This document shows, one piece after another, positions 23,865 to 29,123 of a DNA stretch of 64,000 nt (position 1 is its first letter; every line of letters begins with the position of its first letter). The notes under the pieces were generated by a model that saw nothing but the letters and a program-made list of their open reading frames with translations, was not told the DNA's origin and did not search any database. The position numbers were made by a program, and so were the translations under genes. The stretch lies in sequence record OR545507.1; one strand, 5' to 3'.

Positions 23865-24476
23865 TCAATCATGTTTATTCAATTTCTTCTGTTCTTTTTT
23901 CAAAGCTTTCATATGACGACCAAACTCTCGAACATGCCATAGATGATCGGTTTCCCATAATTCTTGACGTAACCTACGTTCTTCTAGTAGTTTCGACTTG
24001 TCAATGTTATTTTTCTTTTTTTGTACATTAAAGAAATTATTCATATGTTCTTGGAGAAGATTACGACCTTTAACTTTCTCAAGAAACTCATCAACTGTTT
24101 CAGTTTTATTCGAACGTAGTTGATTACATCTGGAGCACATAGTATTAAAGTTTGACTCTAAATCAGGTCCACCCTTAGATGCCAGATGATTATGGTCAAC
24201 TGTCATTAAAACTTCATAAAGACCACATACAGCATATACATTTAAATGTGGTTTACCATATACTGGATCAGAACATAATGAACGTTCAATGCGTACTTCA
24301 GTAGCTTCAATCCCACATGCCACGCATTTTGGATTCTTAACAAAAGTAAGAACTTTTTGTGGGAAATATCGAAAAGTAATACCATTTAAAGTGTAGCGTT
24401 TCATCTTAGTACTTCGTTGATTTAATTCGTCAAGAAGTGATAATTTTGTCGTATAGTAAACATGATATTTGTTCAT
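23865..24476 (-). CDS. HNH endonuclease-like protein
   Basis: CVACG...TVDHNHLASKGGPDLESNFNTMCSRCNQLRSNK; AAGGA RBS before ATG at 24476. Confidence 0.85.
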   Translation of the reverse strand: MNKYHVYYTTKLSLLDELNQRSTKMKRYTLNGITFRYFPQKVLTFVKNPKCVACGIEATEVRIERSLCSDPVYGKPHLNVYAVCGLYEVLMTVDHNHLASKGGPDLESNFNTMCSRCNQLRSNKTETVDEFLEKVKGRNLLQEHMNNFFNVQKKKNNIDKSKLLEERRLRQELWETDHLWHVREFGRHMKALKKEQKKLNKHD

Positions 24477-24477
24477 T

Positions 24478-24786
24478 TTATTCCTTGATATTGATTTTAA
24501 TATCTTTACCTTGTAAATCACGAATAGTTTTAATCAATGCGTCGTGTTTTAAAGCACATTCATTGTAGACTGCATCCCAACGAGTAAGTACTTTAAGAAT
24601 TTCTGCACCATCATAACCTTTAAAACCATTTTTGTCAATCATAATTTTTTGTGGTAGAGGTGTATCATCATCACATCTTTCTAACAGAATTTCTTGTTTA
24701 ATTGGTGCGGGGGATTGTAGTTTTACTTGCTCGGCACACCCACTTATAATTAAAAAAGAAATCATTGGAACTAATAATTTTTTCAT
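24478..24786 (-). CDS. o-spanin (Rz1-like lipoprotein)
   Basis: Lipobox ISGC; Pro-containing; downstream of the i-spanin. Confidence 0.8.
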   Translation of the reverse strand: MKKLLVPMISFLIISGCAEQVKLQSPAPIKQEILLERCDDDTPLPQKIMIDKNGFKGYDGAEILKVLTRWDAVYNECALKHDALIKTIRDLQGKDIKINIKE

Positions 24787-25157
24787 TTGAATTTATTCCT
24801 CGCTGCTTGAGAATTTTGTTTTAGTTCATTCAGTACTTTTACACCATCTTCATCTAAACATACATTCTTATAAACTTCACGTTCTACAATAAAAGGAACC
24901 TTTGTTTCAATAACTTTAGCATTATCTTCCATGATTTTTTTAGTTTCAAGGTAATTTTTTGCATTTTCTTGTTGCATTTTATCCAAGGCGGTATCAACTT
25001 TTTTAGCTATTTGTTGCTCTATGCTTTGTTGATATCCACTGTAATAAGTATTAGCTTCCCAACCAGCATAAGCTGAACCGCCAATTAATAATACAAAAGA
25101 AATTGGTTTCCAAAATGGAATAAGAATTTTTGAAACAATTATTTCTAACATACTCAT
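24783..25157 (-). CDS. i-spanin (Rz-like)
   Basis: N-terminal TM, coiled coil, VYKNVCLDEDGV. Confidence 0.8.
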   Translation of the reverse strand: MSMLEIIVSKILIPFWKPISFVLLIGGSAYAGWEANTYYSGYQQSIEQQIAKKVDTALDKMQQENAKNYLETKKIMEDNAKVIETKVPFIVEREVYKNVCLDEDGVKVLNELKQNSQAARNKFK

Positions 25158-25210
25158 AATAATATCTCCTATAGTTGATGATATTATTTAGAGTATACAA
25201 TTGTATAGTT

Positions 25211-25630
25211 TTACAACATTTTTTGAATATGTTCTACTAGTTCATACAGCTTCGTTTCATTATTCTCGAACTTTTCATCAACTTCAACATTGAATTTTTC
25301 TTCTAGTTCCATGACCATTTCAATCCAATCAAGCCAATCAAAATTGAATTTTTCTTCGACTTCCAATTTAGTAAGATTGAAGTTCGCTGATACCTCATTC
25401 TCTGATGTATCACAGTAACGAGTAGTGATGAATTTGACAATTTCTTTTTCAACATCGTTTAATTCACGAGTTTGATATTCGGGCTGAAGATACCACCATT
25501 CTCCCTTATTAATAGATTCCAATTCTTGTTTGATTTCATGCATTACTTTATAACGGTCAGTACTTTTATCAATAGAATTTACTTCTTGGTTCAATACATG
25601 TAGTGCATTTTTAATACGTTCATTTAACAT
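25211..25630 (-). CDS. Acyl carrier protein-like domain protein with Ser-to-Trp at the phosphopantetheine site
   Basis: C-terminal FDWLDWIEMVMELEEKFNVEV vs ACP consensus DSLDxVELVMxLEEEFxIEI. Confidence 0.75.
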   Translation of the reverse strand: MLNERIKNALHVLNQEVNSIDKSTDRYKVMHEIKQELESINKGEWWYLQPEYQTRELNDVEKEIVKFITTRYCDTSENEVSANFNLTKLEVEEKFNFDWLDWIEMVMELEEKFNVEVDEKFENNETKLYELVEHIQKML

Positions 25631-25643
25631 TTTATCACCTTAT

Positions 25644-25673
25644 AAAAAAAGAGAACTCCATATGAAGTTCTCT
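25644..25673 (-). terminator. Rho-independent terminator
   Basis: AGAGAACT...AGTTCTCT hairpin plus T-run. Confidence 0.7.
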
Positions 25674-25674
25674 G

Positions 25675-25703
25675 ATTATACATAATTACTTTTTCTATGT
25701 CAA
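25675..25703 (-). promoter_or_regulatory. Consensus sigma70 promoter TTGACA-17-TATAAT
   Basis: Perfect match with TG extension, upstream of the ACP-like gene. Confidence 0.85.
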
Positions 25704-25704
25704 G

Positions 25705-28494
25705 TTATAAATCACGGAAACGATTTGGTGTGTTTAAGCGGTACATTGAGTATAATCCCAATCCACGCATAATCTCACCTGCCCAGAAACCAAAAAACAT
25801 ACCATTATCAGTACCTTCTCTAACTGCTGGACTCCATGAACCATTCATTGGAGAACCTGGACTTACAATAACATAGTTCTTTTGAAGTTCGAGAACTAAG
25901 TTATCAGCGAGTGTTGTTAGACCTTCTATTTTACATCCAGCCAATCCAGCAGCACAAGCCCCAGCTAACCACAACCCACACATATGACCTGTAAAGTCCC
26001 AATCTGGACCTTCAACTGTGCCATCTTTATTGAAGATTGTTGGTGAACGACCATCATTATCTTTTTGAAATTGAATTAAAAAGTGAATCCAATTCTCACA
26101 AAATTCAACAAGATCTGCTGGTGGTTCAATTCCTCTCTCTGCGAGTTCTTGCCATGCTCTGGCAGCCCCAAAGAACGCACGTGGTTCATACCCACTCCAT
26201 GCTTGATCACCCCAATGTAGCATAGTAAATGTATCTGGTTCACCATATTTTAAGTTATCCCAGCGGTTCCAAACATATGCTTGTGCACATGGACCAACAG
26301 TACCGAATTGTTGAGTAAACCATGTTTGAGAATCTTTCATAAAGCTTAACATGTTGCCTAAACGTGTGTTATCAACTGGTTGGTCTTTAAAACAATATAT
26401 CACAGGATATTGATAACCTGGATACGGTAAACCACGCCATCCTGAATACTGGTTCGCATACGGGTCAGTGATGTTAGAAAATGGTATTGTTCCTGGTGTG
26501 TAATGCAATGAGTTTAACAAATAATCCTTGATTACACAATCCCCTAACTGTGCAGTATATGGTGATTCACCTGCAATTGTTATTGAAAATGTCATAGTAT
26601 AGTCATCACCGTCAGCATCCGTGTATAATTCTGGAATGTCATTAATACAATACCAATCAATTATTGCAGCAACACCATCTACTGGGGTTGTATCAGGTAA
26701 AATAGTAATATCTTCTAGTTCACTATAAACTGGTGCATCTGGTCTTGGGTCAGAACTTGGATGATTTGGCTGATACCCAGATAAACGTAATGTATCGGAA
26801 CTTAGTGTGATTGTAGTCCATTCCCCGTGTGTTGCAGGAATCATCCACCACCATCTCCAACCATTATCATCTACAATTCTTATATTGTAATCATCTTCAT
26901 ATGAACGATAGGTAAAAGATTTAACTTCAGACTTATTTGTTGCTAATAGCCAAAATCCAATAACAGCACCATCATCTTCACCACAAACTAACTGATTAAT
27001 GGTATCGCGGCGTGTAACTAATATATCAGTACTATATATCATTTCGGACGTAGCTGCACCATAAGGAACAACAATTCTACTATCAGCAATTATATAAGGG
27101 GAACCATCTGCTTTCTTTTCTCTAACAAATGCACTTAAAGGTGTTAATGAATGTGTGATATTTTGGTCTTTACTTTCCGGTAAGCCACAACGATAACGAA
27201 CAACATCATGGTCATTTTTTGTTTTTGACAATTCCAGTACTGGTTTAAATGATAACGGCTTACCATCATCACATACACCACCATAGTCTACAAGTAATTT
27301 AGAATCAGCATTGACCCTGAACCAAATAGCTTGTTGTTCCATAGTACTTTGTGCACTTTGGTCTTGCCTGATAGTAATATATCCTAGAGAATTTCTACCA
27401 AACTTAGCAATAGCATCACTAGGATAAAAATATTCATAGGAAATACCATCAGTGAATGGTGTGGTTACAATTGTACTTTGTCTGAAAAATTTATCTCTGG
27501 AGTCAATATCACCATAAGCATAACACGTTAGTAGTGAACATTTCCAACCCAAATAATGTTTTCTTTCTTTTGTTATTTTATATAACAAATAAGAAGCATC
27601 ACTAAACCATAATTCTGCATCTGATGCGTTATCAGCAAATTCCAAATCAATTGGAACATGAAGAGGGCGGTTGTGTTGCATTTCATTTCGTTGAATTATC
27701 ACACCACCATATTCTACTGGTTGACGATTTGCAAAATTTAATTTATATACACCATTAATTGTTGTATTCTTTAATTGAACAGTTCCTTTTTCCGATTCGT
27801 CAAAACCTTCTGCTAAAATATTACCATCCCAGTCGATTTTTCTACCCATGAAATCGATAATCCAGTCAACATCATATTGTTCACCTGGTGTATCCCAATC
27901 AACACTACCATCTGGTAATAATGCTTTTACTGACGCATTTATTTGGTTCCATGCTAAAGCACCTTTGAATGCAAATGTTACTTTATCCAAGAACTGACCA
28001 TAATAAGGTGCACCATGTGGTATTTTACATTGTCCATTTGTAAATGTAAATTCTACACCCTTGAAACCACCATGTGTAGGCCATCCATCATCAGCTAAAG
28101 GCCAGTTAGCCAATATAGGTTCTTTGGCATTAACTATCCAGTTACATTGTAGTGGTGTAGGTGGATCTGGTAATTCACGTCCAGCATAAAAGTACTGATG
28201 ATATGCGTCCCAATACCACTTTGCCTTATCTAAAAACATTGGATCATTTGTTGCCAGATACGCATAAATGTATCCTAAAATTAATAGACTTTGACCTTCT
28301 GTTGTCCCGTCACCGTTTGGTTGACCTTCCATTGCAGAATAGTTAATAAAATGACGGTTGTTCGCCAAAACACCCTGATTATTCACCACATAATGTTGTA
28401 CTGTTGGATCTATAGTATCACCAGTATTTCTTTCAATAAACTTATGATGCCCATAAAGAAGTTGTACTATATTATCAATATTATTGTTTAACAT
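25705..28494 (-). CDS. Large GH8-like (alpha/alpha barrel) glycoside hydrolase with insertions
   Basis: GTTEGQSLLILGY and NASDAELWF resemble the BcsZ/CelA motifs TSEGQSY and SASDGD. Confidence 0.65.
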   Translation of the reverse strand: MLNNNIDNIVQLLYGHHKFIERNTGDTIDPTVQHYVVNNQGVLANNRHFINYSAMEGQPNGDGTTEGQSLLILGYIYAYLATNDPMFLDKAKWYWDAYHQYFYAGRELPDPPTPLQCNWIVNAKEPILANWPLADDGWPTHGGFKGVEFTFTNGQCKIPHGAPYYGQFLDKVTFAFKGALAWNQINASVKALLPDGSVDWDTPGEQYDVDWIIDFMGRKIDWDGNILAEGFDESEKGTVQLKNTTINGVYKLNFANRQPVEYGGVIIQRNEMQHNRPLHVPIDLEFADNASDAELWFSDASYLLYKITKERKHYLGWKCSLLTCYAYGDIDSRDKFFRQSTIVTTPFTDGISYEYFYPSDAIAKFGRNSLGYITIRQDQSAQSTMEQQAIWFRVNADSKLLVDYGGVCDDGKPLSFKPVLELSKTKNDHDVVRYRCGLPESKDQNITHSLTPLSAFVREKKADGSPYIIADSRIVVPYGAATSEMIYSTDILVTRRDTINQLVCGEDDGAVIGFWLLATNKSEVKSFTYRSYEDDYNIRIVDDNGWRWWWMIPATHGEWTTITLSSDTLRLSGYQPNHPSSDPRPDAPVYSELEDITILPDTTPVDGVAAIIDWYCINDIPELYTDADGDDYTMTFSITIAGESPYTAQLGDCVIKDYLLNSLHYTPGTIPFSNITDPYANQYSGWRGLPYPGYQYPVIYCFKDQPVDNTRLGNMLSFMKDSQTWFTQQFGTVGPCAQAYVWNRWDNLKYGEPDTFTMLHWGDQAWSGYEPRAFFGAARAWQELAERGIEPPADLVEFCENWIHFLIQFQKDNDGRSPTIFNKDGTVEGPDWDFTGHMCGLWLAGACAAGLAGCKIEGLTTLADNLVLELQKNYVIVSPGSPMNGSWSPAVREGTDNGMFFGFWAGEIMRGLGLYSMYRLNTPNRFRDL

Positions 28495-28495
28495 G

Positions 28496-29123
28496 TCATA
28501 CTCCTGCTCTAATCAATGCACCGTACCATGTAACTCCTTTATCGTATGTTTCTAATGAAATAATATCTTTTTCACCAATTTCATAAGAAAGAACAACTGG
28601 TCTATTATATGACCATTTAACATTAGATCCCCAATTAACGAGGTTAGACCCTGTTTGCTGAGTTAATAGGATAGTAATTGAATAAACTTCAGTAGGAGCA
28701 GCACCAATAGCAATAGTGGTATTTCTGTCAGATAAATTAATATTAAAAACTGTATTACCTGATAGGGGATTAATTAAAATATTATTAGAACTCAATACAT
28801 TATATAATTTGTTACTAGCACTATCATACAATGTTACCCATTCTGTTTCATGATTCTCATTAGTAGCTTTAGCTTTTATTTTTACATTATTTTCGGAAGA
28901 AGTCATTCCAGTCCAGCCAGAAATAATAAAAGAACTGTTTTTATTTGTTCCAAATGATGCAATTACTGAATCACTAAGAGAACTATCTTCACCGTCAATA
29001 GATCCGAGTACTGACAATGTTAAAACCATCATTTTTAATGTCTACACCAGTTGCACCTGAAAAATTATTTTGAAATTTAATAACTCCGGTAGTGTGGATA
29101 TCTGTGAAAATTTGTTGTGCCAT
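28496..29123 (-). CDS. Tail-fibre-associated structural protein, +1 frameshift at about 29006
   Basis: AAGGA RBS and ATG at 29123 (MAQQIFTDIHTTGVIKF); joins GSIDGEDSS... if one C is skipped; C-terminal WGSNVKWS...DIISLETYDKGVTWYG. Confidence 0.6.

Follow-up and report, generated by a model that had tools for sequence, protein, structure and literature searches.

The window (the whole stretch of DNA that we analysed, 64,000 nucleotides of the record OR545507.1) comes from an Asteriusvirus jumbo coliphage. Between positions 24000 and 27000 it shares 100% identity with Escherichia phages vB_EcoM_G17 and Sharanji and 99% with 121Q, PBECO4 and phAPEC6. In this region we found, on the minus strand, a small gene whose product has the fold of an acyl carrier protein (ACP), its upstream signals and two spanin genes. 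The features are as follows:

25675..25703, minus strand: sigma-70-type promoter, seen in the sequence, with the -35 box TTGACA at 25703-25698, a 17-nt spacer and the -10 box TATAAT at 25680-25675
25643..25673, minus strand: 10-bp hairpin (25673-25650) and then a T-run, a terminator-like site at the place where the G17 record has a terminator annotated
25635..25641, minus strand: Shine-Dalgarno sequence AAGGTGA, seen in the sequence, 4 nt before the ATG at 25630 and invariant in four aligned relatives
25211..25630, minus strand: coding sequence of the two-domain ACP-like protein, 139 aa (phrog_18343; Sharanji gp448, G17_00413, phAPEC6 gp313c, 121Q gp510)
25508..25621, minus strand: N-terminal helical hairpin, residues 4-41 (AlphaFold2 helices 4-18 and 23-41; A9, L10, E16, S23 and Y27 invariant in the family)
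25214..25471, minus strand: ACP-fold domain, residues 54-139 (AlphaFold2 model, profile match and structure searches)
25325..25339, minus strand: start of helix II, D98-W99-L100-D101-W102 (from the alignment; W99 stands in place of the phosphopantetheine serine)
24783..25157, minus strand: Rz-like i-spanin gene, 53 nt downstream of the ACP-like gene (phrog_1152, E = 6.6e-29)
24478..24786, minus strand: o-spanin lipoprotein gene, overlapping the end of the i-spanin gene (phrog_2425; lipobox-like N-terminus; the K64-1 orthologue is annotated as o-spanin)

Regarding the ACP-like gene itself, its product matches the phrog_18343 profile over the full length (E = 2.6e-61; residues 2-139 align with positions 1-138 of the 138 in the profile), and two PHROG families named 'acyl carrier protein' match it more weakly. 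More than 30 genomes have the gene with an intact reading frame, and it is a core gene of the RaK2-like jumbo phages. The public records name it 'acyl carrier protein' in Sharanji (gp448) and phAPEC6 (gp313c), 'D-alanyl carrier protein' in fEgEco12, and 'hypothetical' in others. We found no study on the phrog_18343 family or on serine-less phage ACPs when the literature was searched for phage ACPs together with spanins or with rIIB and for ACP-like proteins without phosphopantetheinylation. The sole exception is a remark on the Eneladusvirus 'ACP' gene near the spanin genes (PMC7760394), and phrog_18343 is a family without a described function.

The gene order is strongly conserved downstream. 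After a gap of 44-75 nt downstream of the ACP-like gene, all the lineages that we examined (the window, K64-1, BF and seven metagenomic or isolate loci) have the i-spanin gene and then the overlapping o-spanin gene, and most of them have an HNH endonuclease gene after the spanins. The synteny of the three genes holds down to about 19-30% identity, and the ACP-like gene keeps a fixed position in Asteriusvirus, Alcyoneusvirus, Eneladusvirus and the metagenomic clades. Upstream, the neighbour is a tail-fibre module in the window, A4 and P0009, and an RlaP-type nucleotidyltransferase gene directly in P0007, P0011 and P0016; in K64-1 and BF three or four small ORFs lie between the nucleotidyltransferase gene and the ACP-like gene. 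No holin, endolysin or antiholin was found among the nine neighbouring ORFs. There is also a 432-aa ORF in phage CMSTMSU that fuses the nucleotidyltransferase and the ACP-like gene. We rejected it as an assembly or frameshift artefact, because the record is labelled UNVERIFIED, its ORFs are fragmented and the 10-nt gap between the two genes is kept in the sister contig.

Following the minus strand from the stop codon of the 929-aa tail-fibre gene, we meet TTGACA/TATAAT, the hairpin with its T-run, AAGGTGA and the ATG, in this order. A previous reading of this DNA, made from the sequence only, had described a perfect TTGACA-17-TATAAT promoter, and we confirmed it: the arrangement occurs a single time in the 64 kb, which is upstream of the ACP-like gene. 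Allowing up to one mismatch, there are 13 sites in the 64 kb against 1.9 expected, 12 of them on the minus strand. The -35 box is conserved in the relatives A4, P0009 and P0011, and their -10 boxes differ by at least one base. The hairpin, placed between the -10 box and the ribosome-binding site, has a folding energy of -13 kcal/mol when complete (z = -5.2) and shows a compensatory change in its stem among relatives; an RNA whose start lies 6-8 nt beyond the -10 box retains just -3.5 to -1.6 kcal/mol of this folding. Since transcripts started at the promoter would carry only a partial hairpin, read-through from the tail-fibre gene would be stopped and the promoter-initiated transcripts would pass. 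We infer that the hairpin terminates transcripts coming from the upstream tail-fibre gene. The promoter, hairpin and ribosome-binding site form a unit common to the window, A4, P0009 and P0011. In the sister lineage with Trp the ACP-like gene lies 10 nt after the nucleotidyltransferase gene and has no promoter of its own. In the 121Q/G17 lineage the gene is probably expressed early and together with the spanin genes, where 'early' is read from the promoter type, that is, a consensus sigma-70 promoter. One wastewater metatranscriptome contig lies inside the ACP-like gene, which is no proof of transcription.

Fold and domains of the protein

The AlphaFold2 model obtained from the family alignment has a mean pLDDT of 87 and shows two helices (4-18 and 23-41), then a linker of lower confidence and an ACP bundle, so both the ACP fold and the N-terminal helical extension claimed by the sequence-only reading are borne out. 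Foldseek and an exhaustive VIA-align search returned ACP or PCP chains only, all of them over residues 54-139 (with a TM to target of at most 0.78 in Foldseek and a Z of at most 9.1 in VIA-align). A profile built from 28 family members and compared with the PDB matched the E. coli and B. subtilis ACPs with E about 8e-8 over the whole ACP length, and in this comparison residue 99 falls on Ser36 of the DSLD motif. The helix II string quoted by the sequence-only reading corresponds to residues 98-117 of the 139-aa protein, and its claim of a Trp at the invariant Ser, which would block canonical phosphopantetheinylation, therefore agrees with the profile alignment. The Pfam scores remain below threshold, with 12.1 bits for PF00550 (gathering cut-off 20.8) and 17.9 bits for PF14573 (cut-off 32).

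The hairpin behaves in a different way from the ACP domain in the searches. When residues 1-56 were searched alone, no homologue was found beyond the family itself; when the 28 members were scanned with Pfam, no family came up consistently for the hairpin and there was no LYR-type match, and against the protein atlas the hairpin matched only unnamed clusters with scores at chance level. Full-length matches to BFVD models of homologues had an rmsd of 9-20 A, and therefore the mutual placement of the two domains is not consistently predicted.

We also searched the phage genomes for the enzymes that usually accompany a carrier protein. There was no match to a phosphopantetheinyl transferase (PPTase, PF01648) in 121Q, BF or K64-1, no second PP-binding gene in 121Q, and no match to AMP-binding (PF00501) or PlsC-type acyltransferase (PF01553) families in 121Q or BF. 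Thus, the gene content of these phages gives no sign of acyl-carrier chemistry. As lipoprotein acylation takes phospholipids and not acyl-ACP as donor, and most lineages are without the serine, we rejected a role as acyl donor for the o-spanin lipoprotein, which was hinted at before (PMC7760394).

The C-terminal domain is a descendant of a bacterial-type acyl carrier protein. The protein is an ACP by descent and fold and a non-member by the defining functional features, since the serine is replaced, the curated score threshold is not reached and the accompanying enzymes were not found in the phages searched.

The serine site across the family

The site equivalent to Ser36 reads W, S, T, D, E or R in the family, and we could sort the members by their residue at this position:

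i) Trp in D-W-L-D-W. This group holds the close relatives of the window (at least 96% identity) and a second coliphage lineage that is about 72% identical (vB_Ec-M-J, Ecwhy_1, fEgEco12). In the window the Trp99 codon is TGG, at 25334-25336 in plus-strand numbering.

ii) Ser in phage A4 and three metagenomic relatives, with 63-74% identity. The codon in A4 is TCA.

iii) Thr in RaK2, K64-1 and other Alcyoneusvirus. The codon in K64-1 is ACA.

iv) Asp, Glu, Arg or Ser in metagenomic clades, where the codons GAT, GAG and AGA were found.

v) Ser within the canonical DSLD motif in Serratia phage BF (Eneladusvirus), which is a distant orthologue with the codon TCT.

The labels 'acyl carrier protein' and 'D-alanyl carrier protein' are misleading where the site is Trp, Thr, Asp, Glu or Arg. 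The sequence-only reading had proposed to check whether the Trp is conserved, and it is so in the two coliphage lineages of group i), with S, T, D, E or R elsewhere.

Position 99 is among the most variable columns of the 28-sequence alignment, in which M1, A9, L10, E16, S23, Y27, D98, D101 and W102 are invariant. All 28 members start helix II with D-x-[LWC]-D-W and carry S23 and Y27 in the hairpin, and 11 representatives of the lineages were checked singly. Furthermore, an acidic residue (E or D) stands at position 104 in all members, most of them keep E110/E111, and the ACP domain is acidic throughout, with a pI of 4.0-4.9 in every lineage. A variable site 99 amid invariant neighbours suggests that the cofactor site is dispensable across the family and that Trp is the solution of one lineage. 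Therefore, the idea of a mimic purpose-built around the Trp does not hold, as this site takes six different residues in the family.

The maximum-likelihood tree joins the Trp forms in one monophyletic clade (support 96/97), placed among Ser-bearers; Ser appears at scattered places and at least five state changes are needed. Ser is kept over long branches in BF, A4, P0009-P0011 and P0015. Since all canonical ACPs and the most distant orthologue have Ser, we infer that Ser was ancestral and was replaced about five times, in a tree whose root is not established. The dN/dS was 0.235 between the two Trp lineages, 0.24-0.30 among the Ser-bearers and 0.17-0.29 between Trp and Ser forms. These similar values indicate that purifying selection was not relaxed after the change from Ser to Trp.

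The Trp codon is not an accident of one record. We found the identical TGG in more than 20 independently sequenced phages and in the second coliphage lineage, and the contigs from four public runs, which include a bovine gut metagenome and a wastewater metatranscriptome, had no variant at 25334-25336. The closest Ser-bearer, A4, has a codon that is two steps away from TGG. The point mutation or sequencing error that the sequence-only reading had allowed for is thus excluded. Judged from its residues, the window protein is without the capacity to carry 4'-phosphopantetheine at the canonical site.

Possible roles of a serine-less carrier fold

The anatomy and the evolution of this protein are solid; the mechanism is proposed only. 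We tentatively favour, by a small margin and with somewhat less than an even chance, that a host ACP client such as PlsB or MukB is bound by the cofactor-free ACP-like protein. The protein would then be a stoichiometric binding module without cofactor and not an acyl carrier. The acidic start of helix II (D98, D101, E/D104, E110/E111 and the family-specific W102) would dock on a basic patch of the partner, and the contribution of the hairpin would be more affinity, a second contact or oligomerisation. The partner would be a host client that accepts apo-ACP, for which PlsB and MukB, the cases documented in E. coli, are the candidates, and a protein without the serine would act on it as a dead-end competitor that is not turned over as a substrate.

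Two reported effects of apo-ACP are consistent with such a partner. Apo-ACP inhibits the glycerol-3-phosphate acyltransferase (PlsB) more strongly than holo-ACP does (PMC3896788). AcpP acts on the MukB ATPase through the acidic helix II, and its apo form stimulates this ATPase as much as its holo form does (PMC8602292), so MukB is a possible target. SpoT, one of the targets put forward by the sequence-only reading, was reported not to interact with apo-ACP (PMC3896788) and is an unlikely one.

Several of our results fit this docking on a host client. The ACP fold and homology are established over the full domain, and D98, D101, W102, S23 and Y27 stay invariant around a variable site 99 in the 28 sequences. 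The Trp clade is nested among Ser-bearers and still under purifying selection, the domain stays acidic, and neither a PPTase (121Q, BF, K64-1) nor acyl enzymes (121Q, BF) were found. The protein is missing from the phAPEC6 virion proteome, in which the product of the adjacent tail-fibre gene, gp314c, is present. Finally, the promoter is a consensus sigma-70 one, and early-type genes (RlaP nucleotidyltransferase) lie upstream. Nevertheless, AcpP is present at about 100 uM (PMC8602292), and consequently a competitor would need a high affinity or a high expression. The residues W102, S23 and Y27, absent from AcpP, and the conserved hairpin suggest a family-specific interface rather than generic mimicry, and the acidic residues of AcpP helix III are lost in the profile alignment. 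Moreover, a stable core gene with fixed synteny is less typical of host-takeover or counter-defence genes, and Ser is retained over very long branches in several lineages, where the cofactor may matter.

The binding of a host client is only narrowly ahead, and a phage partner is almost as likely. In this second explanation, which we consider possible but by itself rather unlikely, the protein would serve a phage-encoded complex as subunit or adaptor, much as the mitochondrial ACP is a structural part of complex I and of NFS1-ISD11. Its hairpin and D-x-L-D-W patch would bind a co-evolving phage partner, and its variable residues 99 and 100 would be lineage-specific interface positions. It would suit a core gene that keeps its position across Asteriusvirus, Alcyoneusvirus, Eneladusvirus and the metagenomic clades, and invariant residues that are specific to the family and absent from AcpP. 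Site 99 is stable within clades and different between clades, and both Ser and Trp forms occur in phages isolated on E. coli, which means that the state of the site does not track the host. Nevertheless, we identified no candidate partner, and the upstream neighbours are variable (tail fibre, RlaP nucleotidyltransferase, small ORFs). The evidence on virion association, which bears on this explanation, is mixed. For Eneladusvirus, LC-MS/MS of virion preparations revealed the orthologue in three phages, with spectral counts of 3-5 (PMC7760394), low counts that could come from carry-over; the phAPEC6 virion proteome, as said above, is without the protein.

We regard as improbable a role in the envelope or in lysis timing that would be linked to the spanins or to an rII-like function. 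It supposes a cytoplasmic regulator at the inner membrane whose gene is transcribed together with those of the two spanins and which has a fused counterpart in the serine-less ACP N-terminus of RIIB of some T4-like phages. The conserved order of ACP-like, i-spanin and o-spanin genes, an adjacency already remarked by others (PMC7760394), speaks for it, as does the RIIB of Aeromonas phage 65, whose N-terminus shows an ACP helix II motif with Gly in place of the Ser. However, all the members belong to one collinear phage supergroup, and therefore the synteny may be mere inheritance. Furthermore, the spanins act in the periplasm, the neighbouring ORFs include no holin, endolysin or antiholin, the searches of 121Q gave no RIIB, and the match to the RIIB N-terminus is weak.

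Less probable again is a true carrier that would be loaded by the host AcpS in the Ser-bearing phages, with the Trp form as a decaying or neutral relic. BF_0158, the orthologue in Serratia phage BF, does exceed the PF00550 cut-off, and BF, A4, P0009-P0011 and P0015 have kept their Ser across long branches. Nevertheless, the dN/dS of the Trp clade is as low as that of the Ser clade and the frame is intact in those more than 30 genomes, the Ser has been lost in five lineages, and neither a PPTase (121Q, BF, K64-1) nor acyl-activating enzymes or acyltransferases (121Q, BF) were found.

We regard as very unlikely the Trp decoy directed against SpoT stringent signalling or against an ACP-dependent defence protein, which are among the targets named by the sequence-only reading. 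The ACP fold, the loss of the Ser and the consensus promoter on which it was built are real, but SpoT is reported not to interact with apo-ACP, Trp is one of six states of the site, and our searches brought up no ACP-dependent defence system. Finally, a sequencing error or strain-private mutation of a normal DSLD ACP, suggested by the single base between TGG and TCG, is refuted by the records, runs and A4 codon described above.

Comparison with known systems

ACP is among the most connected bacterial proteins, and nearly all its known biology goes through the phosphopantetheine arm. A core phage family under selection, which keeps the ACP fold and the recognition helix and seems to have discarded the serine about five times, is a natural experiment on an ACP without the arm. 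The family is also a concrete way into the question of how giant phages may interfere with, or borrow from, the host ACP network, in lipid synthesis through PlsB or in chromosome organisation through MukBEF.

Compared with AcpP (PF00550), the phage protein has the same four-helix fold and an acidic helix II, in which the window phage keeps D35, L37, D38, E41, M44, E47, E48 and F50 (AcpP numbering). The differences are Trp for Ser36, an extra N-terminal helical hairpin of 55 residues, scores below the Pfam gathering cut-offs and a phage without detected PPTase or acyl enzymes. Moreover, the position of AcpP T39 is Trp in 28/28 aligned phage members, although not in the orthologue of Serratia phage BF.

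This orthologue, BF_0158, is distant (E = 6e-14 to the family profile) and nevertheless shares the two-domain build, the S-x-x-R-Y motif of the hairpin and the place between the nucleotidyltransferase block and the spanin genes. It differs in its canonical DSLD with Ser, in passing the PF00550 cut-off with 38 bits, in having Glu where the other members have Trp102, and in being reported in virion mass spectrometry (PMC7760394).

A functional parallel to the favoured reading would be the apo-AcpP of E. coli, likewise an ACP fold without prosthetic group and with its acidic helix II intact. Apo-AcpP is the form known to inhibit the glycerol-3-phosphate acyltransferase and to bind the MukB joint, whereas for the phage protein such binding is only proposed, and this protein has an additional domain and other residues in helix III.

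ACPs also serve as stoichiometric structural subunits, as the mitochondrial ACP does (NDUFAB1/ACPM, in complex I and NFS1-ISD11) and also AcpM (with MmpL5 and EmbAB), and chains from these complexes were among the structural matches of the ACP-like protein. These subunits need the acyl-phosphopantetheine arm for docking, and neither an LYR-type partner nor the motif was detected for the phage protein.

The last comparison is with the RIIB of Aeromonas phage 65 (411 aa), where a serine-less ACP helix II motif with Gly at the Ser position occurs at the N-terminus of a lysis-timing/membrane-integrity protein, also in a large lytic myovirus. The motif is fused there and free-standing here, and the match between the two is low (hhalign E = 0.0036, probability 9%). 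In 121Q we found no RIIB with T4 RIIB or with the profiles phrog_609, 2886, 3803 and 11221, a weak negative result, as two of the profiles matched nowhere in the controls, and thus we draw no fusion-based link within the 121Q genome. It is a long shot that serine-less ACP modules recur in large lytic phages, free or fused to RIIB, and dock on the same host client (PlsB or the MukB joint); if this were true, the rII and lysis-timing biology and the takeover by jumbo phages would be linked to the host ACP interaction network. The parallel with RIIB suggests that the theme of a serine-less ACP is wider than one phage group.

Promoter and terminator ahead of the ACP-like gene

25643-25703, - strand: overlapping promoter and terminator (sequence and predicted folding)

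The 10-bp hairpin of this terminator begins one base past the -10 box, and RNAs started at the promoter of the ACP-like gene would begin within the 5' arm of the hairpin. According to the predicted folding, the full terminator stem reaches -13 kcal/mol, and the remnant of the stem left in the promoter-derived RNAs only -1.6 to -3.5 kcal/mol. The complete stem would be formed, on this folding model, in read-through RNAs of the upstream tail-fibre gene. The promoter-terminator unit is kept in three relatives, with a compensatory change.

Genes and signals around the ACP-like gene

25705-29032, - strand: tail module, a 929-aa tail protein and a 178-aa tail-fibre protein (comparison with loci L016, L017 and L008)
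25194-25207: perfect 14-nt palindrome TATACAATTGTATA (sequence)
23865-24521, - strand: HNH endonuclease gene (window and orthologous loci)

The comparison of the window with these three loci places the tail module as an insert between the RlaP nucleotidyltransferase gene and the ACP-like gene. Of the lineages compared, the window, the relative A4 and P0009 carry this module, and P0007, P0011 and P0016 lack it; it looks like a movable host-range cassette. On the other side, the palindrome lies 4 nt beyond the ACP-like gene's stop codon, inside the 53-nt gap preceding the i-spanin gene, and may serve as an operator or form a small stem.

The HNH endonuclease gene is found directly 3' of the o-spanin gene in Asteriusvirus and Alcyoneusvirus. 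Three other metagenomic clades were examined: two have it at this position as well, and the contig of the remaining one stops at the o-spanin gene. In Serratia phage BF, the immediate 3' neighbour of the o-spanin gene is not an HNH endonuclease gene. Judging from gene order, the stability of this position is unusual for a homing-type endonuclease.

Divergent records and other ACP-like motifs

L021:1631-2929: 432-aa ORF, Escherichia phage CMSTMSU, UNVERIFIED record (sequence)
L011:3893-4150: stand-alone 85-aa phage ACP on a 69.6-kb IMG/VR contig (sequence)
L020:2471-3706: rIIB, Aeromonas phage 65 (sequence)

The CMSTMSU ORF joins the C-terminal part of the nucleotidyltransferase to the ACP-like protein. 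Because the adjoining ORFs are fragmented, it probably reflects an assembly error or a frameshift rather than a natural fusion. In P0003 (Salmonella phage SD-15_S21), the ACP-like protein is annotated at 192 aa versus the 139-aa core; since its helix II motif stays at position 99, the extra residues seem to lie past the core, and the greater length probably stems from the annotation or the sequence of that record.

The stand-alone ACP, followed by a dUTPase-like ORF, reads DSLDW, retaining the Ser and carrying a Trp after the second Asp as in the two-domain family; thus, Trp102 is not unique to that family. Finally, the RIIB of Aeromonas phage 65 is 411 aa long, whereas that of T4 has 312 aa. 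Its N-terminal ACP helix II-like motif carries Gly in place of the serine, and an HTH domain (PF25787, PF13384) comes next.
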